A DNA stretch of 64,000 nucleotides from Octopus sinensis (lineage: Eukaryota): positions 2,695 to 66,694 of the forward strand of contig NW_021831856.1 in assembly GCF_006345805.1 (NCBI RefSeq), read 5' to 3'. Shown one piece after another: positions 7,105 through 56,105 of the stretch; positions within the stretch are counted from its first letter, which is position 1; each line of letters opens with the position of its first letter. The notes beneath the pieces are model-generated. The model worked only from the letters and a program-made list of their open reading frames with translations, was not told the DNA's origin and did not search any database. Made by a program: the position numbers and the translations under genes.

Positions 7105-7367
7105 GGTATCCATTAGCTAAGTAGAAAATGTTACGTAACCCACAGACTGTTAAGCTAATTTGTGCAGTGGTCCAGGCTTAGCAACTATAAACAATTCTCG
7201 TTAAGTCAGACACTGTATGAAAAGTAATGGATTCAATTTTGACATAAAAATATATTTCGGTATATGGATCATATTTTTGAAAAGTGTTCAAGCTATGTAT
7301 GATATAAAGAGAATATGTAACAGAACACCTTATGTAATGCATGCATTTCTACAACCCCTGCTTACAG

Positions 7368-7481
7368 ATTTAAACGACAGCTAGCTGATATGCGAGCGGC
7401 TGAGTATCGGGCACTGATGGCATTGTCCAGAAACATTACCTGCACCCAGGTAGCGTGTGGGTTAGTTGATATTGAAAAGAG
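7368..7481 (+). CDS. Neuropeptide precursor, peptide exon A: (x)FKR-QLADMRAAEYRALMALSRNITCTQVACGLVDIEK(S/R)
   Basis: Acceptor CCCCTGCTTACAG|A, donor AAGAG|GTATAG, 114 nt, phase 2-2, open frame. Dibasic KR followed by Gln, a C-x4-C pair, and clear paralogy to the exon at 8400. Confidence 0.8.
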
Positions 7482-7709
7482 GTATAGTAAGCTCTAGTTC
7501 AACCCCCAAACACTATCCTTTTACCTAGTCAAGACCTAAACCAAAGCCCTTTCTCACTTACCCGCCTCAAATCCTTAAGTAAATGGTCAATGCATTACAT
7601 TGTTAATATTTTTTTTCGTGTTTTGTGTTATACCAATAATTAATAACGTAGCAATGATAGATTCAATTTTTACAGTTCAAATTTTTGTACCATTTCATTC
7701 ATAAATATT

Positions 7710-7770
<61 letters not shown>

Positions 7771-8399
7771 TATATATGTATATTATATATAGTACTCTAC
7801 CTTCATACTGTGTGGGCTGAGGTTCACACTTCATAAGCCGCTAATATGGCTTGGTTAAACTTCTGATTTAGGTAGCTAAATAATTTATCACTCTTGTGTC
7901 GTAGTTAACACGGCTATACACATTACAGCAGACTCGGAGTTCAATTTCCATAGATCATTTAATGCATATAAATAGTATATGCATATACACAGATATTAAT
8001 GTATAAGTATATATATATGGCCATTTTACGCACACATACACGCATATGCACGTGTATATAGTAATATTTAAGTAAATATTTTGACCATTTGTTAAAGGAA
8101 TATCGTGTTACCCTACCAACCACCTCCATTTCCAGTAAAACTCCATTGCCTCTTCTATAGTTATCTTTATCCAATGATACCCGTTCCTCACATTTCACAT
8201 AGTTGGTCACATTATAATTGTTATGTTATTACAAAAAGCAATATTGATTTTATTTTGTTGTCATTACCTTTTACGTTGATATGTGCAATTTTCCTTCGCA
8301 TTCCTTCTCGTATTTATAACGTTTGTTTCTTATCGACCTGTCAAATTGTTCTGTCATTATTGTTGATGTCCATTTGTGTGTTGTTTTACCTGTTTACAG

Positions 8400-8519
8400 A
8401 TCGAAGCGCCAGACAGGCGATATTAAAACAGCTGAATACCAAGCATGGTTAGCACTTGGTGGCATTGTACCACCGGGTTGTGTCGAGGTTGCCTGTGGGG
8501 TAGTCGATGTACACGCCAG
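8400..8519 (+). CDS. Neuropeptide precursor, peptide exon B: (x)SKR-QTGDIKTAEYQAWLALGGIVPPGCVEVACGVVDVHA(S)
   Basis: Long pyrimidine tract ending TTTTACCTGTTTACAG|A, donor GCCAG|GTACAG, 120 nt, phase 2-2. KR-Gln start and C-x4-C. Matches exon A at 16 of 37 aligned positions by my hand alignment. Confidence 0.85.
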
Positions 8520-8711
8520 GTACAGTAAAATACAAAAAAAACAGTAAAAGCCAAAATCCTGCTAAGCCATGAAAAATCCATTTTCAGGAATAGAAAAGAC
8601 GCAAAGTTTTATGTTCTACCCTCCAGTAACATTGCTCTCCCTTCTCAATTTGTTGATTGATAAATGTTGTTTGCGTGTTTGTACATATGTATATAGGCAT
8701 GTATTTATGTA

Positions 8712-8772
<61 letters not shown>

Positions 8773-8990
8773 TATATATGTATGTAGGTATGTATGAAGG
8801 TATGTATTACAATCCACCCAACTGAAAATGGAGGCCCCTGCTACAAACCAGGGTTCCATTTAAGAGTAATATAGGTCTTCCCGTATAAGCACTGTGGTGG
8901 CATCATTCGGGAGCTAACACAATGAGAAAGCGCACTGTGATCAACGGTGTACAACAACATTTGATAGTCTGGTCTATCTATACTGTGCTG

Positions 8991-9043
<53 letters not shown>

Positions 9044-9119
9044 AATATTAGGGAATAAATCCAAATTTACAGGGAAAAAATCAGATTTAGGATTAAATCC
9101 AATTTTATAGTAAAATATT

Positions 9120-9264
9120 ATATAATATTAATTAGAGACAAAACCACCATTTTGCAAAACATACAAGGAAAGACTTAATCAATACATAAAATTTTAATGA
9201 AAAGTAAAAACCGCCACTACAATGTTTCATTGTTTGTTTTGCAAAATAGTGGTTTTGTCTCTAA

Positions 9265-9276
<12 letters not shown>
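9120..9276. repeat. Inverted repeat (about 42-bp arms) embedded in (TA)n
   Basis: ATAATATTAATTAGAGACAAAACCACCATTTTGCAAAACA is mirrored by TGTTTTGCAAAATAGTGGTTTTGTCTCTAATTAATATTAT. Confidence 0.8.
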
Positions 9277-9342
<66 letters not shown>

Positions 9343-9344
<2 letters not shown>

Positions 9345-9540
9345 CCTCGTGTGTACCGTTGGCGATTTTTTTTCCTCTGTCTCCCTTCTCTGGATCTTTC
9401 CTTCTCCTATGTTTCCGAGGAAGAGCTCCGCTCGAAACGTTAAACCCCCCTTCTTCCCTTCATTCCTGAGCGTCCAATAATACTATATTTGTTCCACATC
9501 CTCGCGTTGTTGTGTTTTTTTTGTGTTTTCTTGTTTGGAT

Positions 9541-9545
<5 letters not shown>
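9343..9545 (+). mobile_element. Penelope-like terminal fragment within (TA)n, with a degenerate minimal hammerhead motif
   Basis: GTTT-CCGAGGA-A-GAGC TCC GCTC-GAAAC-GTT-AAAC has minimal type I hammerhead geometry, with the core CUGA changed to CCGA. Flanked by (TA)n on both sides. Confidence 0.5.
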
Positions 9546-9599
<54 letters not shown>

Positions 9600-10349
9600 T
9601 ACTATACGTATGTATTATGTATGTATATGTATATGTTGTTTAATGAGAATTTTATGAACATTCAAGAGAGCGTGGAATAACACTCTTTTTGGAATCTCGG
9701 AGTACATATAAAGCTATAGATAATATTCGGTTGAAAAACACTTTTGAAAATGATTCTATGTATTAGTCTGTGTATGACACCATGTGTATATGTGTATGTG
9801 TCCATAAAAGTTTTTAAATGCTTGCCGGTGTAAAACCTGGCATTGTGATATGTGTTGCGTCCCTCATTGTCATTCCATAACACGTGGAAAAGTGGTGCTC
9901 GGTATAAGGATTACTTGACTAAAAGAGTACTGCGACAGAGAAACGAAAATATTTGGTGGTTGTGGACACTTGTGGTCTAGTGTAGCCTCGTGTGACCTAG
10001 TGTGTGTGACACACACACACATACACGCATGCACTCACGTACACACACGCATGCACTCACACACACATACACACACACGCATATATACAATATACATAGT
10101 GCTGCATATATAATGAATATATTTATATATTGATATAAATATATTATATATATTTATTAAATAGATATATATATATATGTAAATATATATATATATATAT
10201 ATATTATTATATTATATTATATATATTATATATATATATTATATATATATATATATAGTCAAAAAAAGGGTGAAAAATTGGATATTAAGTTATAATATCA
10301 ATTTAAAAACCAGCGCCTTGCGTATAAAGACTGAGATTCAGTAAATAGT

Positions 10350-10583
10350 ATTAATACACAACAATGAGAGAGAATCCACTATATGGAAGCTCTTACGCAG
10401 ATATAGATCGGCAAAGGGACTCAACCACTAAGCATTGTTCTCAAGAAATAATTCAACGAACCAATAATTCAACACTTGGTGTGTTGAATTATTTTGTGAG
10501 AACAATTCTTAGTGGTTGAGTCCCTTGCGGATCTATCTAGCGTAAGAGCGTTCCATATAGTGGATTCTCTCTCATAGTGTGTA

Positions 10584-10589
<6 letters not shown>
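10350..10589. repeat. Fold-back palindrome with about 105-bp arms inside (TA)n
   Basis: ATTAATACACAACAATGAGAGAGAATCCACTATATGGAAGCTCTTACG..GAAATAATTCAAC is mirrored by GTTGAATTATTTT..CGTAAGAGCGTTCCATATAGTGGATTCTCTCTCATAGTGTGTATTAAT. Confidence 0.9.
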
Positions 10590-10630
<41 letters not shown>

Positions 10631-11644
10631 TCTATATTATAGATATATATATATATATATATAGCATATAATATATATATATATATCTATAATAATATAT
10701 ATATATATATATATATATATGAATATGGATATATAGTTTACTGTTCTGTTACAAATCAAACAACAGATATTCCATCCGGTGTGAAATATAAATATCTTTT
10801 AATATACATGGTATTAAAATAAGAACTATTTATAGTTTCTTGACATGAAGACACGTTGTTAGATAGGTTTTTATAACGTACCTTGTGTCTCCAAACTACC
10901 CTTTATGCTCTGAGTCCGTGGCTTGTTATATTTTTCAAATAGAACAAAACCATGAGCTCAGAGCCTGAAACTCCTATTAGCTCATATTGTAGTACAGTGT
11001 ACATCAAATGATATGGTGTATGTGTTTATATATGTTTGTATGTGTGTGTGTGTGTGCGTGTATTTGTATGTATGCTTGAGTGTGTGTATGCATATCTGTA
11101 CGTAGCTATATGTTGCTATATCTAAAGTTTGTACTGCCTTCTATTGTTCAGCTGCTATTTATATTTATCATTATCGTTTGTTGTAATCATATATCATTTT
11201 CTTTACTCTTATTTCAATCACTTATATTTTCAATTTTGCTATTACTTACAATCCGTCTTATCTTTGTTCTTCTTTCTGCTTGTTATTGTTGCTGTTTAAA
11301 TGTTCTGTTGCTGTTGGGGGTCCCTCTTTTTTTTATGTTTCCGTTTCAGTTCTTTTCTCGTTTGTTGTTCTCAATATTGTCGTGTTCTTTGTGTCTTATT
11401 TTCATATAGTTTTTCTACTTATATCGACATTCCCTTTCCTATGTCACGTTTCTTCAACGTAACAGAAAACGTCATTGAATAGAAGGGTGGGCAGAGTATC
11501 TGTGTGTGTGTGTGCATTTGAAAATATTATCAGCTCATAATTACCAATCTATCTACCTATACACATAACATATATATACATACATATGTATGTATATATA
11601 TATATATATATTATATATATATATGTGTGTGTGTGTGTGTTGTG

Positions 11645-11675
<31 letters not shown>

Positions 11676-11823
11676 TGTGTGTGCGTGTGTGTGTGTGTGT
11701 GTGTCTATAGTTCTATAAATATATATATATATGTCTATAGTTTTATATATATATATAAAATTTTCGGTATGTGGTTAAGCAACTTGTTGCAAATAACCCT
11801 TATTGTTATAATTATATATATAT

Positions 11824-11855
<32 letters not shown>

Positions 11856-12114
11856 TGTCATATGCACATACTTATAGACAGACAGGGGCACGGACACACA
11901 CATAAACACACAAACACACAGTTGTGTAGCTTAGTTTTGCATCTGATTTATCATTAACTGAGTATTATTACTGTAATTATAGATAATGTTGCAGTTACTG
12001 TAGGTATTAAAAACATATTTACACCCTTATATTTATTTTTATTATATTTCCCTTGTACACGCATGATCTTGTCCTTTGTAATCTACTTAAATAGGGTAGT
12101 ATATATATATATAT

Positions 12115-12992
12115 ATTCATAAATGAGGGTGAAAAATTAGATATTAATTTAATAATACCATCAGTTTAACACCAAGTGGCCTAGCACATAAAAAAACCAG
12201 GGAGACAGTACAAATTATACGTAAATATAAGAGAGTTAACGTTAAGTGGTTAACTCTAGTGCTAGAAATAGCTCCTTATTCTGGTATAGCCACCGAAATT
12301 GTTTCCACAAAAGAAATAACATTACCTTCAACGTAAGGAAAGCGAAATACAACGAAAAGATAGATTAATGCTGAACAATTGTTTCTTTATCAACATAATA
12401 TGCAATTATACTCACATATTTGTCTATAAGTCATCGGCAGCATTTGTCCTCGATTCAATTTATCAGACCCTCACGGGCGATAAATACCCGTGCGGTCTGA
12501 TCGATTGCATACATAGTTGTGGTTTAGCTTCCCCGCCAAAAAGCATGCTAAGACTTAGTGGAAACTGATACTGCATATAATATTTGCTGCAGCATATTAA
12601 ATTTATAAATTCATAAATGAGGGTGAAAAATTAGATATTAATTTAATAATACCATCAGTTTAACACCAAGTGGCCTAGCACATAAAAAACCAGGGAGACA
12701 GTACAAATTTATACGTAAATATAAGAGAGTTAACGTTAAGTGGTTAACTCTAGTGCTAGAAATAGCTCCTTATTCTGGTATAGCCACCGAAGTTGTTTCC
12801 ACAAAAGAAATAACATTTTATGTGCTAGGCCACTTGGTGTTAAACTGATGGTATTATTAAATTAATTTCTAATTTTTCACCCTCATTTATGAATTTATAA
12901 ATTTAATATGCTGCAGCAAATATTATATGCAGTATCAGTTTCCACTAAGTCTTAGCATGCTTTTTGGCGGGGAAGCTAAACCACAACTATGT
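12115..12992. repeat. Composite direct plus inverted duplication
   Basis: Direct repeat of about 210 bp (12115-12323 and 12609-12817), and a 177-bp inverted repeat (12511-12687 vs 12816-12992) with one mismatch seen. Confidence 0.9.
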
Positions 12993-14058
12993 CTGTCTAC
13001 ATACATACGTATGTAGACATACATACATACATACGTATGTAGACATACATACATACATATATACATACATACATGTATGTATTATGTATAATGAAAGTTA
13101 AAACAAAGTTTGTTTATAAAATATTTAATTACATTATCTTATGCGTAGGTGATTTACCATGAAAAATATCAGCCATTAAAAAGTAGACCTTATTAAGTCG
13201 TTTGCTTTGTGCTGTTAAATCTCCTGAAGTTGAGTTAATCTCATTAGAGTCCTTCTGTATTCTCACTCTGCACTTCCGACACTGTTATGGTATGGGCTAT
13301 CACAATCACAACTACAACGATATATTGAATGTGTGTGTGGATGTGTGGATGTGTGTGTGAGTGTGTATGTATATACATATACATATGCTTACCCATTTAC
13401 ATGCATGGACTTGAAGTGTATGTTTGGGTCATTTTTGTTTATTTGTCTGTGTGGACAGGGAGCGCTTTACATGCTTATAGTGATGTATATAATACGAACT
13501 GGTTCCTGTTTACTATATTGCTGCTTCTAGCCACTCCGAAATGACATTTCCCAAATGCTTTCTGTTTCTTCTCTTTGTTTAAATCTCATCTAATTAACTC
13601 GTATATTCAATTTCTGTAACCTAATCATATTCCTATCATTGTATTGTTTTCTACATCACACAGCAGAATATAGATGTTGCGTCGAACAAACAAACGAATG
13701 AACGAACTACTGCAATAAGATCCACACTGAGATACCACTAATATACTGTACTTAAATATGAGCCAGATATTATATTGTTTTATTGCCCTACTTCTCTATA
13801 TTTTCTTCTGTTAGGTGAAAGAAGAATCATTAACATGAAAACCAAATTCGATTATAAAAATTGTGGTAAAATGATGACACCAAAACCATTGTTTTTGAAA
13901 ATATTCATTCTTCTGTATTGTTGTATAATATGCCTGTCAAAATATAATGATTTGATTTATTGCAATTGTTTATAACATGTTAATATCATACTTTCAATTA
14001 TTTCAGCATAAATTTATATGGTATATTGGTTTGTGTGAGGGGATAGTATTTGTGCATA

Positions 14059-14135
<77 letters not shown>

Positions 14136-14147
14136 GCGCGTGAGTGA

Positions 14148-14212
<65 letters not shown>

Positions 14213-14218
<6 letters not shown>

Positions 14219-15060
14219 TGAGTAAATTGTCGCCACTATATAGTTTTAAGTTCGAGCATTCGCATAGTTCGTTTTTAATTTTATCGACTACACAGTATAG
14301 TAGGATCAGTTGGGCACCGTCTGTGGGAAAAACAGCACTATGACGCAATTCACTCTCCCTGAAATTTGGAAACGACATGCTGTACTGTTTGACATTCGTG
14401 CCAGAAGCTCCAATAGGAACATTTCAGAGTGTTTGTGTGTCAATCTGAGGACATGTACTGAGAGCGATAAAAATCAAACATCTAGTCAACATCATGGTGT
14501 TTGGAGTGATCGCTAGTGACGGCGAGCTTACGCCTCCATTCATCATCCCACGGGGCCTCAGACTCAACACGAAAGGCCTACATTAAGTGCCTGGAGGAGC
14601 TAGTGCTGCCCTGGGTGAAGCGGGTGACATCTAGGAGACCATATGTCTGGCAACACGATACTACACCATACCATATAGGCAGGACAATTTCTGCGACCCC
14701 ATCACCCCAAATATCTGGCCACATAACTTCCGAGACTACAACCGTCTTAATTATTACGTGTGGGGTGCATTTGACCGAGAGGCCAACAAAACTCCTTGTA
14801 ACACCAAAGATGAACTAAAGGGAAGGATCATGGCAGCATTCACCGACTTAAAAAAGGTGATCGTCCAGGAGAGTTGCAGGAGATTCCGAAGTTGTCTGGG
14901 GGCCATGGTTGAAGCTAATGGCGATTTTGTTAAATAATCTATTCTTTAGTATGTCAAGAAAGTCTATGTAATTTTGGTCAATATATCTATTAAAATGAGA
15001 TGTCAGTGTTACTTTCATTTTTTCGTAATTTAGACGACAATTTATTCACTGCACACTGTA
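14213..15060 (+). mobile_element. Internally deleted, decayed IS630-Tc1-mariner element (maT/DD37D-like or related)
   Basis: Fragments MTQFTLPEIWKRHAV, KAYIKCLEELVLPWVKRV..RPYVWQHDTTPYH, P.IWP.NF.DYN.LNYYVWG, CNTKDELK.RIMAAF. Terminal remnants with the GTAAATTGTCG / CGACAATTTATTCACTG..CTGTA pair. Confidence 0.75.
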
Positions 15061-15299
15061 TATATATGTGTGTGTGTGTTTGTGTGTGTATGTATATATT
15101 TATATGCGTGTTCCTGTGTGTGAGCGTGTATGGATGTAAATGTGTGCATATGTGTGTGTGTGTATACATATATAATATGTAATAATACAAATTACATATG
15201 TATTGTTATATAGATTTAATATTAAATATATTGTATATATGTATGTACATACACATGCGTGTGTATCTGTGATTGCGTGTATGTGTGTGCGTGTGCGTT

Positions 15300-15354
<55 letters not shown>

Positions 15355-16455
15355 GTGAGTCTGTTTCTACGAGGTTCGTCAGTGTGTATTTCTTTGGAGT
15401 CTTTCTTAAATGAAATTTCTGATTTTACTTCAGCGGTAAACGGACATCCTTCGACCAGAGGATAGCCGAATTAGAGCTCTTAAGGCCATGAGCAAAGTGG
15501 CTGGTCATGGCCAATTTGACTTTGCTGAAATGTAGGTATTCGAAATGTTCTCTGTCATCAGCGCTACACTCATAGTCGTACTGTCCGTCAAGAAATCACA
15601 GTGTTCGTCTGTTGTCACACTGTGCCGTGCTGTGTGTTATACGTCACGGTGTGACTGTTTAATTCGTTAGGGTGTGTTGTTTTTTACTATACGTTTGGTA
15701 CAGTTTTATTCTTCGTCAAACACCGTGGATCATTACGTCACACCAAGATTGTTCTTTTGTACGTTATGTTCTATCATTTTTCATACGTATTAACGTGCTG
15801 TTCCTGATTCTACGTCACCTCATCTCGTATATTTTACGTCATACTGTATTGTTATTACGTATATTTTTCATCAAACGCTGTTTGCTACATTATGCCGAAG
15901 GTAATTCTCTGCGTTACGTTCATTTGTTCTTTCTTCGTCTCACTGCCGATCACTGTTCTATTGCACATCAAATTATTTCTATTACGTCCCGCCGTGCTGT
16001 ACATTATGTTTCTTCCACGTTCCGTCATGTTCATCATTGCACCTTCGTCACGCTATGATGATCACCTATTTTCCGTTGCATTGATATTGGATCAATTCTT
16101 TTCTCTCACGTCACGTTTGATGTCCCCGTCTGTATTCTACGTTACAATGTACACTGATCTATGTTGCGTCTTATCCTCACTCTATTACATTGATCTTTTG
16201 CACAATTTCACTTATGTTACTAAGTTACACTGTCTTATTCATCCTTCGTCATATCATACCTTTCATTTTTCTCTACACTATAGAATACTGTATCCTACTT
16301 CATGTTGTCTATGTAGATATATTTCTACGACGTTATGTTAATATGTTTATTCTAAGTACTGTCTCGCTGTCACAATTTCGTTTCGCCGTGTGCCGTTTCC
16401 AAGTATTTCACAGTCCTTTTCTGTTACGTCAAAAAATTGTATCATAACATCATGT

Positions 16456-16486
<31 letters not shown>

Positions 16487-17492
16487 CATACATTTGTATA
16501 TATGATGCAGCTTCACTGCGTTACACCTAACTGTTCACTATGCCACAACGTGGATCTTCTTTGTGTGATGTAAACTTGTTTTGTTCGGAGTATGAACTGA
16601 CTGTTAATTAGTTCCATATATTTTTGTTTTTCTGTTATTTTCCGGATTGTATTCAGTGCGTCACGTGTGACTTTTCTTTAAGTATCTTATTTATTCCACG
16701 TCGTCTAGTGATGTTTTTCATTCGTCAAGTCTCATATTTTATTTTTTTATCATGTCAATTTATATTACGTCATGTCCAAATGTTCCTTTCATGGTATGTA
16801 ATTCTCTTTAATTCTTTACTCTATGCATTTTGAAAATTTGATATTTCATTTCTGTTCTAAATAATCTTATTCATTCTACGACATGCCGTACTGTTTCTTT
16901 ACATGCTCCTCCCTTTTTTTTTCAATATCTTTTATTGTTTCACTGCGTCAAAGTTTGATTACATCGTGTTCACCAAGACAAAGGCATGTTTCTTCACATG
17001 TGACACATGGATTTATCCTTTTTTTGTTACTTTTAGAGCACCCTGTAAACGTACACCCTATCAGCATAGCATGGCTATGTATTCTATATCATACCGTGAT
17101 GCTATGTACATCTTGTCAAAACGGATTTAGCTTATCTCTAAATTACGCTATATTCACACGTTCTAAAGAGTGCCTTATGTGCTACATTCGCCACTCTTCC
17201 AATATTTCACCTTGCAGATGTTTACAATTAACGCACCCAACTCTAACGTCACAGTGCTTCAACATATGTGTACATACATGAATGCATACATAGATAGATA
17301 CATACATACATATATACGTACATACATATATATGTATAAATTAATACACGCGTGCATACGTAATTCATACAGACATACTTAGATGCATACATATGTAAAG
17401 ACATATATATATACATGCATAAATTCATACTTACAAACGCACATGCATATGTACAAACATGCGTACGTACTTACAGCCTCAACGTGTATATA

Positions 17493-18625
17493 CAGTTGCG
17501 GCCAAAATGTTCAGAACGGCATTGTTTTTGTCAGAAAAGTAGATATAATTTTTAATAGAACTTGTGTTATTTTCTATAATTTTCACAGACAATAAATACG
17601 ATATTAATTGTTATTGTCTGAGATTTTGGTGTAATTTGAGAGGATAATACAAAAGTTATGGATGATTTAGTGATTTACTGCCAAACCCACGGCGGCCAAG
17701 ATGATCAGAACGGTTGCTTTTACTTCATGTTTTACTATATTTAACCGGTGAACTCTAATGCTTTGAATTTGTTTACTCGACGGTTTATTTACTAAACATT
17801 AGTAAGAGTATCTGCAGTGTACTTTGTTAATATAATGCCACTTACTCCGTTACTAATTCGTCAGCAGATTATTAAGCTTCGAAAGAAGGATAATTTAAGT
17901 ATTGGGTCTATTGCAAAGATTGTTAACAAGTGAAAAAGTGTTGTTCACGGTATTCTTAAGGTCTACGATGATTGTGGTTCGTGTGAAGCAAGAAAGTCTA
18001 CAGGTAGGCCATGAAAAACGACCAACAGAGAAGATCGTGCTATGGTAAAGTTGGTTAAAAAGGACAGATTTAAAACTGCTGCTGCTGTTTCTCTGGAAAT
18101 GTGCATTGTACTGAAGAAAACTTTATTTCGAAAAACTGTGTGTTGTCGTTTAGTTGAACATGACCTACAAGCAAGAGCACCTGCAGTGAAGCCACTAATC
18201 AGCTCCAAGAATAAAAAATGTCGTCTTACCTTTGCAACCGAACATATGTTGTGGTCTCAAGAAAAATGGCAAACGGTGCATTTCCGGGATGAATCTAAAT
18301 TTGTTATTTGGGTCAGATGGGAAAAGGTACGTTTGTCAAAAAGTAGGTGAAAAATTGTCGCCTAAATGCCTTAAGACTAGTGTTAAATTCGGTGGAGGAA
18401 GTGTCATGGTTTGGGGGATGATATCTGGAGATGGTGTGGGCCCTTTGGTGCGATTACATGGAAAGGTAAATGCAGGAGTTTATAAACAACTTGTAAAAGA
18501 TCATGTCTTGCCTGTGCTGAGAAATTCAACTAAGCGATCACCCATATTCATGCAGGACAATGCCCCATGTCACAAGGCTAAGGTGGTCATGAACTTTCTC
18601 AAGGCTAAAAGATTATTGTTAATAT
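17493..18625 (+). mobile_element. 3'-truncated Tc1-family (DD34E-type) transposon with a decayed transposase
   Basis: TA|CAGTTGCGGCCAAAATGTTCAGAACG terminus. ORF from ATG 17835 with stops: MPLTP..GRP*KTT.REDR, F.DESKF, GGGSVMVWG, GPLVRLHGKVNA, FMQDNAPCHKAK. It breaks off before the WP..SPDLNPIE motif. Confidence 0.88.
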
Positions 18626-18880
18626 AGCCACTGAAAAGTGGCTATATTTTTAAATCGAATTCATTTTAAATCGAATTTATTTTAATAGTATCGATTTTAT
18701 CATTATCGATTTAAAGATATAGTCCCCAAATGCGCGGAGTCAGTTTAATGTTTCTTTAATTTATTGATTTTTAAAAAATATATATTATAGTATATTTAAT
18801 TTTTTCTATATATGGATAATGTCTTTCACAATCGAATTGCTTTATAGAAGATATTTCTCTTAATAATATATGTGCATGAA

Positions 18881-18916
<36 letters not shown>

Positions 18917-18926
18917 TGTATGTATG

Positions 18927-18958
<32 letters not shown>

Positions 18959-19009
18959 ATATTATATATATATATATATGTATGTATGTATGTATATATA
19001 TATATATAT

Positions 19010-19067
<58 letters not shown>

Positions 19068-19275
19068 CATACACTAGAATACACAAACATTCGCAAACGT
19101 GTTCTGAAATCTAACAATTCCCATGCAAACATACACTCACAGAAGCACGAATGCATATTACAAAATACGTCAGAGGACACACACACACACTACGGAGATG
19201 TACCTGCATTGCAAGTAACATGATCTAAGATCGTGTGCTGAAGCAAAAACAATTGCAATGAGGAAGATGCCTGTC

Positions 19276-19439
19276 AGCCATTTAAGGCCAAAAAAAACGT
19301 CAGTTTCACTTCAACATTTAAATTAAATTTGTGTCAAAATATTTTCATCGCTTCCAAACCGCGACCTGTTCATTGACAACATTTTGTGTATTTAAATGTT
19401 GAAGTGAAACTAACGGTTTTTGTGAGTTCTTAAATGGCT
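19276..19439. mobile_element. Small MITE-like inverted-repeat element
   Basis: AGCCATTTAAG..AAAACGTCAGTTTCACTTCAACATTTAAAT is mirrored by ATTTAAATGTTGAAGTGAAACTAACGGTTTT..CTTAAATGGCT. Confidence 0.65.
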
Positions 19440-19583
19440 TACAAACATCTCCACGATGCAATTGTTTATATAACTGATATATTTATTCTATACACATTAA
19501 CACAAATTCGGTAAACATATATATATATATATATATAGATAGATAGATAGATAGATAGATAAATACACACATATGTGCCTGTA

Positions 19584-19627
<44 letters not shown>

Positions 19628-20421
19628 CAAATTAGTTACCACTCTATCTCAAGGAGCTAAAAGCCAAATGAGCTAAGCAGGACATAATAGACCTAGCTGC
19701 TAACCCATGGCAACCCACATCAGTTAGAAGCCTCTATTCCTGCCATTTTCTAACTAGTTCTTTATATTTCAAGCTCTTCCTTTCATGTAACCGGTCCCAT
19801 GCTTTCGATGAACAGAAAATCTAAGTGGAGTTTTCTTATGGATCATTTATACTCGATTTCAATCACTAATATTCAGCTGCTATATAAAGCAGTTATAAAT
19901 TAGGCTATAGCTTTGGTGGATTGCTTAGCTTATATAATTGTGCTTTTGACGAGTCGTCTTTAACAGATATATTATGCATAAAACAGTGTGAGTCAGAAAC
20001 ACTGAAATAAATATAAATATTAGAAGACCTGAATTTAAGAGAAACATTTAGCATGTAGACACATTTTTCTCTACCTGTGATGCGCAGAAAACAAAAGAGA
20101 AGTGTCATGCCTGACCGTTTTACGGTTTGTTAAGCGCTCATACATACATACATGCATTCATACATACATATATAAATACATACATACATGCATACATACA
20201 TACATACATAATTACAAAAATACATACATACAACAGTCTTTGAATTGAAGTTCGCACTTATATATAACACATACAGAGACATGTGCGCATAAAACACACA
20301 TACACGTACATGATGACTTTGTGCACTTGGTCGATCTCGTGATTAATATTGAATTATTTTCTATATCCTTATCTCTTTCTATACAAAAGCTCTTGGCAGT
20401 ATCGGTACAATCGCCACAGGA

Positions 20422-20422
<1 letters not shown>

Positions 20423-20464
<42 letters not shown>

Positions 20465-20550
20465 TGTAGTAGTAGTAGCTGTGGTGGAGGTGCCGTCGGT
20501 GGTGGTGGTGGTGGTAGTGTAGGTGGTGGTATTGGTGGTAGTTGTGGCTG
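20423..20550 (+). repeat. (TAG)n / (GGT)n trinucleotide microsatellite
   Basis: Visible runs; these are the source of the poly-Ser, poly-Gly and poly-Thr ORFs in the track. Confidence 0.9.
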
Positions 20551-23140
20551 AGTAAATTATGTCACTTAATCCGATTGGTTTGTTGGGAAACCCTTTAAAG
20601 TTTTCTATCTTAACTAAATATACATTGCAAGACAGAGTAACTAATATCCGGATAGTAGAGAAGATGTATGAAATCAGCATTGAGATAAACGGCTTGTCAA
20701 TTTTCCCGGAAACGATTGAAATACACGTGATCGAAAACAGTTACTCGAGAGAAGAAAAAACACATTGATCGAAGTACAACAATTAATCGAATTATAAATA
20801 AATATTCGAAGTACAGAAAATTGCTTAAAGGAAAATAGATTTTATTTTTTATTGCTATACAATATATAATCTCAAGTTATGAATGATTGCGAAGATATAA
20901 GTGTATGTGTGTGTACCTGTCGTGTTTATATTTAACAGTCTTGAACACTAGTTTCTAAATCGTTAAACATAAGCATAACAAGCTCAGACACATATAAGAA
21001 ATTATTTTATATTCTATTGTAATTTTTATAGTAAATTAGATATGAGATATTAAATAATTATATATACATACACACACACAGACACACACACACATATATA
21101 TATATATATGCATATAATGTTAATATAACATATATAGATTATATACTAATATATCATATTATATATCATATTATTTTATAGTCGTATTTTATATTTTGCG
21201 AGTTAGCAGGACCCTGTTTCTATAATTGGTATTACAGCCGATCATTTTCTATCAATTGCTTTCTTAGTGAGACAGTCAATGTTAGCTCAATCACCCATAA
21301 GAGTGTTATAGTTCCCTCAGCTATACTCGTGTAGATTTAGTTTAACTCAATATTGAAAGGTAGCCGAAATCTCTTCAATTTAATAGAATTTCTCGCTATT
21401 CTCTGTGGTAACTCATTGAACAACAATGAATACTTGCCAGCAATTTTCATGAAATGTTGATCATGATTTTCAATATGGCACGAAACAAGAAATATATTGT
21501 TTCAATAATGTAATTTTTTTCATGCACATCTGACCTGACATATTGCGATTTCAACAAGTTATATATAAAATACAAAATATAATATATGCTACTTAAATCT
21601 CCACCATGAGCTGTAATTTTTGAACGATCTCTGAAAATAAATTGCGAAGCACTGTCTCAAAAAACCTTACAATAAGGAAATAAAATCAGAAATAGTAGCC
21701 AAATCCCCCTTAAATGAAAGCGTTCTAACATATTAGATAATACTGTCCTAGACATATTGTATCTAGAAAATTTCATATGCTGGAGCACGTCTTATCATCG
21801 GATAAGATCTATTCGATCAGGGTTGACATTAAGTTCAATAGCTGCAGCAGTTGTCATTCACGTAACCAGTCGTCATTCACGTGCGAGTAAGACTTGGTAA
21901 CGTAATTCATGCGTATGCTCGTCGATTTCGGTGCCTAGGTTGTCATGAGCAGTCAGGGAAGTCCTTTGAGGAATCCTCTCATTCTTAACCTGGTGGAATA
22001 ACCGGGATGTGACAGCTGGAGTAAAAGAGAGGATTGCACTAGCACGCAACAGGTACTCGTAATATGTTGTCTGATTCAGGAATTCAAGTCAGAAATTATG
22101 ATCATAAGTTAATACCTCATCCAAAAAATGAAAATGAACTTAAATTATAGCAAATTCTACAGATAGTCGAAAATTGGCAAGTTGCGCTGGCAATGTAGGT
22201 TCTATTTCATGTAATACTTTTACATTTCGTTTAAAACTAAACAGTTATCAAATCGGCCTAATAAAAGCCTTTGAAAAACGGAAATAGAGCATCCGTCGAT
22301 CGCTGCTACTGCTTTGATATGTTGATGTAAGCAGACTTACTATGAATGATGCGAAGGACAAGTAAATCTATTAGTGCTCCATTTTTACACAGTACAATGA
22401 TATTCTATTGCATCAGGAGAATTGAGGGAGAATTGGTCTAATGTCGTACCTAGTGTCTTGATATTAAAATACCAATATTGAGAGTAGCCACCATCCTCAA
22501 TCCACAGTTGAAGGGAATATATAACACTTGTCCAACAGTTTTGCCTGGCTTTAGAATTCAGCATAAACCTAGATGAGTAGCCTAGATAGATTGCTACCAT
22601 TTGTCCAAGATGTTATCTCGAGTCTCCTGGGGAAAGGGGCAACTTAATATCCCTTTTACAGGTTGGCTTCTATAACTTAAGGCAAAGACCTTTCACAAAT
22701 AACAGGAAAGTACAACATTCGTTGGCGATCCAGTGAACTATAACGATTATAAAATTGAACAATATCGAGTGTTTTTTTTTATAGATAATAATCACTTATT
22801 AATGTCCATAATTCATGATACTGTTTCGATTTCGTTTGTAAGCTATAAACATAATCTTAGTTCCGTAGTTATAAATTGGTAATAAATTTGTAATCTTAGC
22901 TTAAACAATTAATTATATTTAAGAAAAGAGATGCTGCACTGTTATATTTTTGAGGTAAGTACACACACACACACACTCACACACAAACTCACAAACACAC
23001 ATCTTTCCAACAGCTTTTGATTTGAAAAGTTAAAATTAATTACTGGCGAGATCTTTCCACTTAATTTGATAAAATTTTAGTAACCAGACATTTTTTCCCT
23101 ACACTGGTTTCTTTACACTTAGTTTTACTTACGATTTTAG

Positions 23141-23246
23141 CGGCAAGAAAAAACGTAGTGACATATCAAGTGACGACATCAGACGTTCAACTCTGGCTCA
23201 AAGACTGATCCGATTTGCAGCAGAGAGACCTGCAAAGACTGAGTAA
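23141..23246 (+). CDS. Neuropeptide precursor, last coding exon C: (S)GKKKR-SDISSDDIRRSTLAQRLIRFAAERPAKTE*
   Basis: Acceptor TTTTACTTACGATTTTAG|C. The first base completes the AG left by exon A or B to give AGC (Ser), followed in frame by GGC AAG AAA AAA CGT (G-KKKR). Stop TAA at 23244-23246; a donor ATG|GTGAGG follows at 23258/23259. Confidence 0.8.
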
Positions 23247-25054
23247 TCTAAAGAAATGGTGAGGCATTTGATTTCTTTCTTTCTCTGTCTGTCTGTCTCT
23301 CTCTTTCTCTCACTCTCGCTCTCTGAAATTTCTTTATTTATTTCACTGTTTTAAAATGAAAGCTGTCCAGTTTTTATATTTACATATTTACAGTCACTTA
23401 GATTTAGAAACATTACAAAACTCATCCATGTTAGAACTTCGAGTTTTAGTCAATACATCGGACTTGGTGCAGCTGATTAACTGAATAGAATAGCTCCTTA
23501 GTATGTTAGATTAGTAGACTATAATTTGTAGATTAGTGAATTTGGATAAAGATAGATAAAAATTTAGGATCGATGGCAAGTTGAAGAATCGAAGCAGGTT
23601 GCAATAAATCCTATGCAGGTTCTAAATCATTAAAATACAGCGGTAACGATGATTATGGTAGCGACGACAACGACGACGACGACAATGATTAATATGTTGA
23701 TTAAGATGATGATGATGATGATGATGTAAATCACGTGAACTAAGGGAAGGAAACAGTATAAGACTACTGCTTTGGTAATCTAAGAAAAGTTTAAAAGTAA
23801 GGTTAACAACAACGGAAGCAGACTTTCACTGTTTCTCTTACGTTGTGTATTATTGCTGGAATGATGTTAGTATATTACAAAGAGGAAGCATCTAAGTAGT
23901 GGTTTTATCAACTACAGATGTCAACCAAATCTTCTTCGAACCACACTCCATCGTTTTATATAAGTGAGACTACATGAAATAATGTAGTCCTAGATAATCG
24001 TAGAAAAAGAGGGTCATAGTTGAAGTGTCTTTGATCATATGTCTGCTCAACAACAATTGATTTGAAGTTACACAAAATAGTCCATCTTAGAAAAGTGCCT
24101 GCAGCGTTTCTGGAAGTTTACAGAACTTACGATAATGAACAGGATGATAGAAAGAAATACGTCACACATTGCCCTGTGTAAAAACAGTAAGCTATGCAAC
24201 TAAAGAGGATAGGAACACAGCGAGTTGGCTTCGATTCTAGGTTGTAGCCATTTCACTACATCTTTATCGATTAGGTCTTTGATAATGAACTCTCCATAAG
24301 CTCAATGCCTTTCTCTTTAATGAAGAATTGTTTGAATTGACAGTATTCCATTGCTAGTACCTCTTCGACTCCATGAAGGCGAAATACAAAGAAGAATCTA
24401 TGTAGACTTGGACTTAATGGATTGAGGAATGAGGAATATGCGAGGGAAGTTTATGACTGACTTCTTTGATTTCCAGTGTACAGGGATTTCGAGGAAAGTT
24501 GACAGTTCACATACAAAGAAAAGAAACATCATCGATAAAAATAATAATATTTTAAAAAGATAATTTAAAATATGTTTTATTGATTGTAATTAAAAAATAG
24601 TAACAATAAAAGATGCAACAACTGAATAACAAATTAAGTTTATTCTTTTAATGAGCATTGCTTTTGTTCGTTTATTTCATTTCTATTTATACTTTTTTGG
24701 CGCTCGTGCATTTAGATATACAACCAGAAGTATGTATGTGTAATTCTTTTTTTTTAAATTAAGTATATTCACAAAAGTAGATTGCAAAACTTTGTTTGTC
24801 ATAGTAGGTCACAAACAGGTGATATAGCTAACAATTGAACAACTATATGTATGTAACATTAGGTATACACTTCACATTTGCATATCACTATTTTGTGCTT
24901 TTAGCTGAATTACTTGACACATGTCCTTAGTGGGTATTGATGAATAAATTCATAGATATTGAATACCAATGTGCTAATGGATTTACTAAATTTTATTGTT
25001 TACTAAGTATGTAATCCAATAGATGCAGGTGAAACTTAACGAGCAAAAATATTA

Positions 25055-55305: not shown

Positions 55306-55453
55306 ATATATATATACTGAATATCAGTGATTCACTCCACTGTTATACCGAGCTGCAAATATATATATTCAGTGTATATTTAATCGTTAAATGGGTAAAT
55401 ATTGCGTACATATGACGAGAATTCTCCGTCGTGCAAATTTTACGTAAGTTGTC

Positions 55454-56105
55454 ACTTAAGAATAACTAAGTAACGGCGAGTGAACCGGGAGAAGCCCAAC
55501 GCCGAATCTCGTCGGCCGCGCCGGTCGTCGAGAGCTGTGGCGCAAGGGTCGTACACGGTCGATCGTTTCGCCCGGCTAGGTTCGGAGTCCCCTCGATCGG
55601 GGCTGCCCAGAGCGGGTGCCAGGCCCATTCGGAGCCGGCGGCGATCGGCGGTGTTCATCGGCCCGAGAGTCGGGTTGCTTGGGAACGCAGCCCAAAGCGG
55701 GTGGTAAGCTCCATCCAAGGCTAAATACGGGGACGAGTCCGATAGCCGACAAGTACCGCGAGGGAAAGTTGAAAAGAACTTTGGAGAGAGAGTTCAAGAG
55801 ACCGTGAAACCACCCAGGGGTAAACGGGTAGGACCGCTCACCGCGATCGCGAGGGGACTCAGTCCGCTGCTTCACGCCGAGGCGCCGTCGTCGTCGACGA
55901 ACGCGCCGGTGGCGGCCGCTCGTTCCGCGGGCAGTCGTCTGCCGTCTCGTCGGCGTTCGATTCCCGGGGCGCCGGCATCGGACGCACTTCCCCTCCGATC
56001 CGTCGTCGCGACCCGTTTCCCGTCGGGCCGGTAGGCGCGCGGCGTCCGCAGGTCGCAGACGAGAGCCCCGTCGCCGCCGCGCAAGCGGCGGTCGGTGGGA
56101 TCCAC
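55454..56105 (+). pseudogene. 28S: 28S rRNA pseudogene fragment (5' end, D1-D2 region)
   Basis: Conserved LSU blocks AGTAACGGCGAGTGAA, GAGTCGGGTTGCTTGGGAACGCAGCCC, GGTGGTAAGCTCCATCCAAGGCTAAATAC and ACAAGTACCGCGAGGGAAAGTTGAAAAGAACTTTGGAGAGAGAGTTCAAGAG. There is an internal deletion near the 5' end, and it stops just before the expected GACCCGTCTTGAAACACGGACC block. No 5.8S or 18S nearby. Confidence 0.9.

Follow-up and report, generated by a model that had tools for sequence, protein, structure and literature searches.

We report that a segment of Octopus sinensis DNA, 7368-23246 (+) of the 64,000-nucleotide stretch analysed here (the window; G000:C8327:2695-66694, from an unplaced contig of the 2.72 Gb genome), almost certainly comprises four coding exons of the O. 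sinensis orthologue of the QSGamide/PXXXamide/iPTH (invertebrate parathyroid-hormone-like) prohormone gene. Two further sequences carry this gene: the minus strand of chromosome C5, at 126.79-126.82 Mb, and contig C11358, which runs on into C11597. An initial annotation, made from the letters of the window, had proposed a 'hidden' gene for a secreted prohormone in which two exons of the type Lys-Arg-Gln...Cys-x4-Cys share a common Gly-Lys-Lys-Lys-Arg exon. Homology supports this prohormone and both of its peptide exons, but the gene is already known: RefSeq models it for O. sinensis as LOC115211866 and LOC118761766, and the precursors of the sister species O. bimaculoides were published in 2020 (Table S1 of Xie et al. 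2020, PLoS Genet, PMC7224569). Moreover, the proposed layout with two peptide exons (A and B) overlooked a third cassette exon, D, located between B and the shared exon C. The exons, their phases, their paralogy and their family membership are read here directly from the sequences, as are the isoforms annotated or published for sister species. The features in the window are:

7368..7481 (+): cassette exon A, 114 nucleotides (nt); x-F-K-R and then QLADMRAAEYRALMALSRNITCTQVACGLVDIEK(S); QSGamide-type, with Cys-x4-Cys.

8400..8519 (+): cassette exon B, 120 nt; x-S-K-R and then QTGDIKTAEYQAWLALGGIVPPGCVEVACGVVDVHA(S); QSGamide-type.

15434..15531 (+): cassette exon D, found by tblastn; iPTH/PXXXamide-type, (S)GKR-TSFDQRIAEL(R)ALKAMSKVAGHGQFDFAE(I), followed by GKKKR of exon C.

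23141..23246 (+), stop included: shared last coding exon C; Gly (amide donor), KKKR, a 29-residue tail SDISSDDIRRSTLAQRLIRFAAERPAKTE and TAA.

23247..23608 (+): putative 3' untranslated region (UTR), from a reading of the sequence only, with AATAAA at 23603-23608.

Re-reading of the sequence places exons A, B and C where they had been claimed, with AG/GT sites and matching phases. Exon A is bordered by the acceptor ...cttacAG/A at 7366-7367 and the donor AG/GTatag (the slash marks the splice point) and translates as (x)FKRQLADMRAAEYRALMALSRNITCTQVACGLVDIEK + AG; exon B is bordered by tttacAG/A and AG/GTacag and translates as (x)SKRQTGDIKTAEYQAWLALGGIVPPGCVEVACGVVDVHA + AG. The acceptor of exon C, ttttAG/C at 23141, is arranged such that AG+C gives Ser, followed by GKKKRSDISSDDIRRSTLAQRLIRFAAERPAKTE and TAA at 23244-23246, and the first base of the exon completes Ser after A or B and Ile after D. 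Since A, B and C are in one phase, the junctions A-C, B-C and A-B are all in frame. The claimed paralogy of A and B is borne out by tblastn inside the window (E=1.5e-7, 47% identity), and the same program finds no other A/B/D-like exon there. Exon A is included in RefSeq models P0007 and P0009 and in O. bimaculoides 'transcript 1' of Table S1, and exon B in models P0005, P0006, P0008 and P0010 and in 'transcript 2'. The tail encoded by exon C is kept in the family, e.g. as ...ERYxLL(K/R)ALIQRAA... in other molluscs, and the putative 3' UTR that follows it is close in length to the 385-nt 3' UTR of a Sepia-type transcript (L009, described below).

Exon D, with acceptor cttcAG/C and donor AT/GTaggt, is similar to A and B over the first half of its length, KR-x-x-x-D-x-R-x-AE-x-x-AL-x-A, with a tblastn E value of 6.5e-4 against A. 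On C11358 it is intact, with 99 nt that read (S)GKR-TSFDQRIAELRALKAMSKVAGHGQFDFAE(I) and then GKKKR from exon C; a divergent copy lies on C5, and the O. bimaculoides form is 'transcript 3' of Table S1. In the window the exon has 98 nt, an A being absent after 15473 (GAATTAGAGCT compared with GAATTAAGAGCT on C11358), and the resulting frameshift leads to an in-frame TGA at 15489-15491. The missing A is probably an assembly indel, that is, AA read as A in a long-read consensus, because the exon is undamaged both on C11358 and in the O. vulgaris orthologue and the lost base was one of two adjacent A. Among the first codons of the exon (15434-15437), the second is GGT (Gly) in the window, on C11358 and at the O. 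vulgaris locus L018, and GTT (Val) on C5 and in O. bimaculoides, so that the upstream Cys peptide of an A-D or B-D product acquires either S-G-K-R, an amidation signal, or S-V-K-R, which is none. The iPTH-type motif (basic-basic-x-S-D-Q-R-(I/L)-A-E-L...G-x-x-D...x-G-basic-basic) is present in exon D as GKR-TSFDQRIAEL...GHGQFDFAE(I)-GKKKR. Furthermore, comparison with hhalign of the cephalopod profile with 11 arthropod iPTH precursors taken from Table S1 of Xie et al., the deorphanised Tribolium peptide included, gave a probability of 97.7% and E=2.5e-12 over exon D plus GKKKR.

A signal-peptide exon was not found in the window by tblastn. Its existence upstream had been predicted correctly, and it is located at C5:126823328-126823420(-) and C11358:44204-44296(-) (MTRHILILSIVGMVLVSLVNARYIPEEEL + AG/AA; ATG ACA CGA ...; donor gtaagc), about 9-10.2 kb upstream of exon A, which alignment offsets place about 200-300 bp past the 5' end of contig C8327. 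The exon reads MTRHILILSIVGMVLVSLVNA/RYIPEEEL-, its signal-peptide character having been judged by eye. It starts right after an acceptor (ttttAG/ATG), and a non-coding exon may therefore sit further upstream. With it, the signal peptide, short spacer and dibasic site that precede the peptides in other members of the family are likewise found in the octopus gene, via an exon outside the window. The exon ends in TTG AG/gtaagc on C5 and in TTG AA/gtaagc on C11358; once the first base (A) of exon A or B follows, the completed codon is Arg on C5 (R-F/S-K-R-Q) and Lys on the window-type copy (K-F/S-K-R-Q). Hence, the earlier guess that furin-type R-x-K-R sites would form holds for C5, where the exon ends in AG, but not for the window-type copy, where AA results in K-x-K-R.

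A protein search with the conceptual A-B-C product as query returned seven proteins, all labelled 'uncharacterized' or 'hypothetical'. From O. sinensis, these comprise XP_029636461.1 (LOC115211866; 135 aa), which is signal-A-D-C, and XP_036355813.1 (LOC118761766; P0009, contig C11358; 102 aa), which is exactly the signal-A-C product that had been proposed; XP_014776777.1 of O. bimaculoides (LOC106873782) and a protein of Argonauta hians are both signal-B-D-C, and two O. vulgaris models are also among the seven. The RNA contig L009 (1223 nt, SRR25158135) contains a 104-aa open reading frame (ORF), signal-B-C, that matches the published Sepia officinalis precursor almost completely and, being uninterrupted, provides direct evidence of the B-C splice in a cuttlefish. 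Thus the A-C and B-C products foreseen for the window both have annotated or observed counterparts, and the two predicted precursors correspond to transcripts 1 and 2 of O. bimaculoides in Table S1; what had not been foreseen are the further products that contain exon D. Annotated and observed proteins represent the isoforms 1-A-C, 1-B-C, 1-A-D-C, 1-B-D-C and 1-C (1 denoting the signal exon), and across species they share a last exon with the Gly-basic signal and the tail under alternative peptide exons, as is characteristic of the family. The 1-C form is P0016 of O. bimaculoides (UniRef A0A0L8GZR7), a 64-aa protein running from the signal exon to exon C with all peptide exons skipped; the conserved tail of exon C may have a role of its own.

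The family itself was identified through the '...QS-G' endings of HMMER matches, a search of the literature under the LOC numbers or the peptide strings having given no match. A HMMER profile of five cephalopod precursors, run against 1.84 billion proteins, gave 67 matches at E<=1e-3, 23 of which are at E<=1e-10, from gastropods, bivalves, annelids and brachiopods; Haliotis, Mizuhopecten, Batillaria, Bradybaena, Mercenaria, Lottia, Elysia and Capitella are among them, as is the Platynereis QSamide precursor (P0055, E=3.5e-5). Two peptides recur in these matches on a common signal and tail, alone or together: KRQSADV(R/K)xAEYLAWIALGG..P..GC..VACGVVDV..S-GKKKR and R(R/K)SSSDQRIAELQALxALS...(A/G)HGQFDPxxI-GK(R/K)KR. 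The Cys-type motif KRQ-x-x-D-x-x-x-(A)-E-(Y)...C-x4-C-G-(V/L)-(V/I)-D-x-x-x-S + G-K-(K/R)-K-R, carried by exons A and B, comes back among the 67 matches and in Table S1, and in alignment A1 residues Q34, D37, A41, Y43, C57, V60, A61, C62, G63, D66, G104, K105, K107 and R108 are invariant. The exons are conserved in O. bimaculoides, O. vulgaris, Argonauta and Sepia, and the Cys pair and GKKKR, conservation of which had been suggested as a check, are kept across cephalopods and beyond. The peptide of exon B is 76-78% identical to those of Sepia and Argonauta and 53-55% identical to gastropod peptides, and that of exon A is 43-50% identical to each QSGamide peptide compared; exon B is the conserved orthologue of the Sepia/Argonauta exon and exon A the divergent paralogue. 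Exon A occurs in O. bimaculoides, O. vulgaris and O. sinensis, and its age is thus at least that of the group; additional Cys exons are also found in Lottia and Bradybaena.

These observations agree with what has been published on the family. PXXXamide, first found in Sepia officinalis, was shown to be the ligand of insect parathyroid hormone (PTH) receptor orthologues, with half-maximal effective concentrations of 63 and 413 nM in Tribolium (Xie et al. 2020, PMC7224569), and a 2026 preprint describes an iPTH-receptor pairing in the tick Ixodes ricinus as well (about 52-63 nM). The QSGamides published earlier are the iPTH/PXXXamide propeptides of Lophotrochozoa (Thiel et al. 2021, PMC8557429), and the QSamide and PXXXamide precursors of oyster are of common origin, one oyster gene being differentially spliced into either type; the peptides were seen there by mass spectrometry (MS) (Réalis-Doyelle et al. 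2021, PMC8398477). For O. bimaculoides, Table S1 of Xie et al. 2020 (PMC7224569) gives transcript 1 as signal-KRQLADMRAAEYRALMALSRKITCTQVACGLVDIEKS-GKKKR-tail, transcript 2 as signal-KRQTGDIKTAEYQAWLALGGIVPPGCVEVACGVVDVHAS-GKKKR-tail and transcript 3 as signal-SVKR-TSSDQRIAE(L)KALLAMSRVVGHGQIDVDAI-GKKKR-tail, and a layout with two transcripts is shown there for Sepia, Lottia, Crassostrea, Lingula, Phoronis, Capitella and a termite. Two other candidate families were dropped once the HMMER matches and the literature had pointed to QSGamide/iPTH, namely PDF/cerebrin (LPDLEKI-amide compared with LVDIEKS-amide at the C-terminus) and ELH/CRH/DH44. UniRef names P0016 and the Capitella protein P0019 'Corticotropin-releasing factor domain-containing protein', but a CRF/DH44/ELH assignment was rejected, since searches of P0016, P0019, the tail peptide and full precursors against Pfam returned neither a CRF nor any other match at E<=10.

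The maturation of the peptides can be sketched as follows. The signal exon would be spliced to one or more of three same-phase x-Lys-Arg cassette exons, A and B encoding Cys-x4-Cys peptides of the QSGamide type and D a Cys-free SDQRIAEL...HG..D...I peptide of the iPTH/PXXXamide type, and the last cassette exon used would be spliced to the final exon with its Gly-Lys-Lys-Lys-Arg and conserved tail, such that exon choice would set both the peptide or peptides released and the amidation of the one just before exon C. After removal of the signal peptide, prohormone convertases would cleave at (R/K)-x-K-R and KKKR, a carboxypeptidase would trim the ends, and PAM would amidate the residue before the Gly of exon C, i.e. 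Ser after A or B and Ile after D; the N-terminal Gln of A and B would cyclise to pyroglutamate (pGlu), and the two Cys would bond into a 6-residue loop. When A is followed by B, the junction ...IEK-RSKR-Q..., which is without Gly, would leave peptide A without an amide; when A or B is followed by D, the amide would be kept with a window-type exon (S-G-K-R) and would not form with a C5/O. bimaculoides-type exon (S-V-K-R). For O. sinensis, we infer the isoforms made, the post-translational modifications and the receptor, the pGlu, disulfide and amidation being deduced from established prohormone biochemistry together with the family.

By analogy with iPTH in beetle and tick, the amidated peptides would act on G protein-coupled receptors (GPCRs) of class B1, from the PTH/glucagon/secretin ('cluster B') group, and the receptor is probably a 'cluster B' GPCR of the PTH-receptor type; the Tribolium cluster-B reference TC010267 of Cardoso et al. 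2020 is Tc-iPTHR2. The O. sinensis genome contains at least 16 HRM-domain exon matches, as well as an intronless 407-codon class B1 GPCR ORF (HRM plus seven transmembrane segments) at G000:C4:103910156-103911379 (L019 1157-2380, +). Its best match in the PDB is the human glucagon receptor (E=9e-22), with PTH1R at 3e-14, a comparison too crude for PTH-receptor orthology, and it may be regarded as a candidate receptor of the PTH/glucagon/secretin group or as a retrogene. The HRM matches and this ORF provide candidate receptors but no demonstration of a pairing with the peptides.

Several points weigh against the assignment of the four exons to this family and its function. The 1-nt deletion in exon D, if real, would truncate D-containing transcripts of this copy. 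Octopods are without the Pro at position -4 after which PXXXamide is named (DVDAI/DFAEI), and Argonauta has DFDDI, while Sepia keeps NPEEI; Pro at -4 is, however, only 'mildly conserved', and it is 'SD' and the amidation/cleavage signal that are strictly conserved (Xie et al. 2020, PMC7224569). The Pro gives the PXXXamide peptide its name and does not define the family. No Pfam match was obtained for six precursors, the tail and further members, the family being without a Pfam model, and an AlphaFold2 model of a 137-aa precursor is uninformative (mean pLDDT, the predicted local distance difference test score, of 42), with helices 32-48, 76-89 and 113-135 that are merely suggestive. The O. sinensis junctions rest on Gnomon models and on other species, and receptor activation by QSGamide/PXXXamide is unproven in Lophotrochozoa (Thiel et al. 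2021, PMC8557429).

The presence of the gene on three sequences of one assembly calls for a comparison of the copies. Over about 25 kb, the window exhibits 0.72% mismatches to C11358 and 2.6% to C5, plus many indels, and in a three-way comparison 100 sites are private to the window, 63 to C11358 and 402 to C5. A consensus mosaic of C5 and C11358 haplotypes was considered as an origin of the window and rejected, as private sites in all three sequences mean three distinct versions; these alone do not separate duplication from assembly artefacts. In O. vulgaris, the locus L018 (OX597818.1, 125.67-125.70 Mb) has all five exons intact and shows 1.3-2.0% mismatch to the window type and 3.7% to C5, and a second model of that species, P0005, has C5-like exons and lies on the same chromosome as L018. 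On this sequence comparison, the simplest reading would be two loci older than the split of O. vulgaris and O. sinensis; alternatively, the versions may represent long-lived haplotypes, or haplotigs retained in both assemblies.

The differences between copies are concentrated on amino acids. Between C5 and C11358, 15 of the 99 nt of exon D differ, 14 of them nonsynonymously. Exon B of C11358 departs from that of the window and C5 at 6 nt (6/6 nonsynonymous), by changes common to O. vulgaris L018, and exon C on C5 has 3 different amino acids. Exon A has the same sequence in the window, on C5 and on C11358, and the signal exon exhibits synonymous changes only. For A+B+D, Nei-Gojobori counting yields a ratio of nonsynonymous to synonymous differences per site (pN/pS) of 2.0 for C5 vs C11358 and of 2.95 for C5 vs O. 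vulgaris, and 9 nonsynonymous and 0 synonymous changes for C11358 vs O. vulgaris, pN of the peptide exons being about 2.7 times the intron divergence. The excess of nonsynonymous changes over the intron mismatch rate has Poisson P values of 1.5e-4, 8e-5 and 7e-3 in these three comparisons, which are non-independent, involve small counts and take the intron rate from alignable blocks only; Fisher tests of nonsynonymous against synonymous changes are weak (p = 0.21, 0.03 and 0.09). Gene conversion could also be a source of such nonsynonymous patches. None of the versions has a change in the KR sites, AEY, the Cys pair, VACGxVD or GKKKR.

Turning to explanations other than a family prohormone gene that releases alternative amidated peptides, one might suspect open frames that arose by chance, with AG/GT sites and dibasic motifs of equally accidental origin, the more so as the exons are short (38-40 codons) and lie in a region without a Pfam match. 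This suspicion, to which we assign next to no probability, is already refuted by exon-by-exon conservation in cephalopods, molluscs, annelids and brachiopods (HMMER E from ~1e-73 to the 1e-3 cut-off), by annotated models in five species, by the spliced transcript in Sepia, and by peptides of the family, whose first characterisation was in the cuttlefish Sepia officinalis and which MS has detected in oyster. Far more plausible, and in our view only somewhat short of an even chance, is that A, B and D do not exclude one another but are ordinary cassette exons frequently included together, the main product being a multi-peptide precursor (signal-A-B-D-C or signal-A/B-D-C) in which reliable amidation is confined to the peptide next to exon C, with A-amide and B-amide minor or absent. 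A single phase for all cassette exons places any combination in frame, among RefSeq models the longer ones have the layouts 1-A-D-C and 1-B-D-C, P0004 of O. vulgaris has A-B-D in tandem, and two to three tandem peptides occur in oyster 'transcript 4' and in proteins of Lottia (P0017), Bradybaena (P0018), Mizuhopecten (P0012) and Haliotis (P0011); moreover, the A-B junction ...IEK-RSKR-Q..., although devoid of Gly, is a good cleavage site. Single-peptide forms nevertheless exist, namely P0009 (1-A-C), the Sepia-type L009 (1-B-C) and P0005, the oyster single-peptide transcripts are listed as 'found' in Table S1, and a window-type exon D (GKR) would still allow amidation of the upstream peptide in A-D or B-D. 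In any event, the question bears on the proportions of the isoforms and not on the identity of the gene.

The copy in the window might also be a non-functional duplicate or a mis-assembled haplotig, so that only the gene on C5 matters. An exon D of 98 instead of 99 nt that runs into TGA, an unplaced contig that begins about 200 bp downstream of the expected exon 1, and three versions of the locus in one assembly would all be in line with such a view. We nonetheless consider it improbable: no damage is seen in exons A, B and C or at any splice site, A and B being base-for-base as on C5; C11358 has an intact exon D and exon 1 as well as a RefSeq gene model; O. vulgaris L018, with its five intact exons, is nearer to the window type than to C5; and an error in the long-read consensus could account for the loss of one of two adjacent A. 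Returning to the four exons as parts of a genuine prohormone gene, it is tempting to speculate that two diverged copies predate the O. vulgaris/O. sinensis split and that their peptide exons are under diversifying selection, with the signal peptide, cleavage sites and Cys loop held fixed. This proposal is tentative, and we regard it as rather more doubtful than the multi-peptide precursor; the copy-to-copy excess of amino-acid changes is a lead, not a result. If true, diversifying selection would imply toxin- or pheromone-like evolution in an ancient, otherwise conserved hormone gene, and the Gly/Val switch in exon D, which is part of the differences between copies, would toggle upstream amidation in A-D and B-D products.

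As a discovery the gene matters little, and the excess of amino-acid changes between copies is the sole element that possibly repays further work. The uncharacterised RefSeq entries can now carry the name QSGamide/iPTH precursor. It is also of some interest that a tool-free reading of raw sequence recovered a real multi-exon neuropeptide gene, with only the Cys-free exon escaping it. What the present analysis adds to that reading is the name of the family, exon D, the signal exon with its sequence and location, the single base missing from exon D in this contig and the pattern by which amino acids differ between copies.

The remainder of the window harbours elements of other kinds. In the D-C intron, at 18199-18627 (+), a 142-codon frame is reminiscent of what remains of a DDE transposase of the Tc1/mariner type (Pfam DDE_3, E=0.0013, short of the curated cut-off). 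An interspersed repeat, ...TVIPHHIAIHLSRFIIQ.YVDSSVVLFCIRNKKYIYILEHKP..., is present in two copies at 2-265 and 1969-2157 (region 1-2160), and an element of about 220 bp at about 46.9-47.1 kb has >40 copies of about 90% identity across chromosomes. Long tandem repeats occupy 25.2-26.9 kb and 58.2-63.9 kb, with ...KIFRKFSPKIF.../...ENFWGKFS... in several frames on both strands; these blocks show strong GC skew (+0.24 to +0.27, -0.25 to -0.28) and contain many spurious ORFs of 130-310 codons. At 55401-55877 (+), a fragment of eukaryotic large-subunit ribosomal RNA (Rfam RF02543, 182.6 bits, model positions 24-664 of 3401) is located within a GC-rich block at about 55.4-56.7 kb; isolated in AT-rich intergenic DNA, it has the look of an rDNA fragment or pseudogene, and the long ORFs on both strands of the block are artefacts of high GC.

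When compared with known systems, the gene is closest to the one described by O. bimaculoides transcripts 1-3 (LOC106873782), which is the same gene: the signal peptide is identical, the GKKKR-tail exon and the choice among A, B and D are alike, the exon B peptide is identical to that of the window and C5, and the exon A peptide is one residue off (N vs K). In exon D, however, O. bimaculoides and C5 have VKR...LAMSRVVGHGQ(I/L)DVDAI, whereas the window has the GKR...KAMSKVAGHGQFDFAEI type, as in O. vulgaris. The window holds the second, unplaced version of the locus, with an exon D one base short.

The Sepia officinalis PXXXamide precursor (Zatylny-Gaudin et al. 2016; gene 1, transcripts 1 and 2 in Table S1 of Xie 2020) is orthologous in architecture. 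The exon B peptide shares 76% identity with transcript 2 (signal-QTGDLKAAAYQAWLALGRTLPPDCPEVACGVVDVEAS-GKKKR-tail), and transcript 1, SSDQRIAEL...HGQVNPEEI-amide, is the counterpart of exon D; Sepia keeps Pro at -4 (NPEEI), where octopus and Argonauta have V or F, and no second Cys peptide of the exon A type is listed for it in Table S1. In the Crassostrea gigas QSamide3/PXXXamide gene, Cys or PXXX peptides are likewise spliced between a common signal exon and a GRRKR-tail exon, but oyster has one Cys and two PXXX exons, plus two QSamide-only genes, in contrast to the two Cys exons and one PXXX-type exon of octopus. With Platynereis dumerilii QSamide (Conzelmann et al. 2013; Thiel et al. 2021), the gene has in common KRQ-x-x-D...C-x4-C-G-L-x-D...S-G-K-(R/K)-K-R and a tail, at about 33-46% identity to exons A and B, the Cys form alone being listed for the annelid.

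In the iPTH of Tribolium castaneum and Ixodes ricinus, KR-x-SDQR(I/L)AEL...G..D...I-G-basic aligns with exon D plus GKKKR, and the arthropod peptides are the sole members of the family with a demonstrated receptor, a class B1 GPCR of the PTH-receptor type. They are longer in the middle, and most arthropods have the Cys-free form only, a termite having an alternative Cys exon. As an analogy only, the vertebrate CALCA gene (calcitonin and calcitonin gene-related peptide, CGRP) offers a precedent for alternative exons of one prohormone gene that give rise to different amidated ligands of class B GPCRs. The Cys loop of calcitonin/CGRP is N-terminal, whereas that of the octopus peptides lies near the C-terminus. 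It is likewise only by analogy that PTH, in vertebrates the ligand for the orthologous group of receptors, enters the comparison; sequence similarity is absent, identity between iPTH and PTH being <12% (Xie et al. 2020, PMC7224569).

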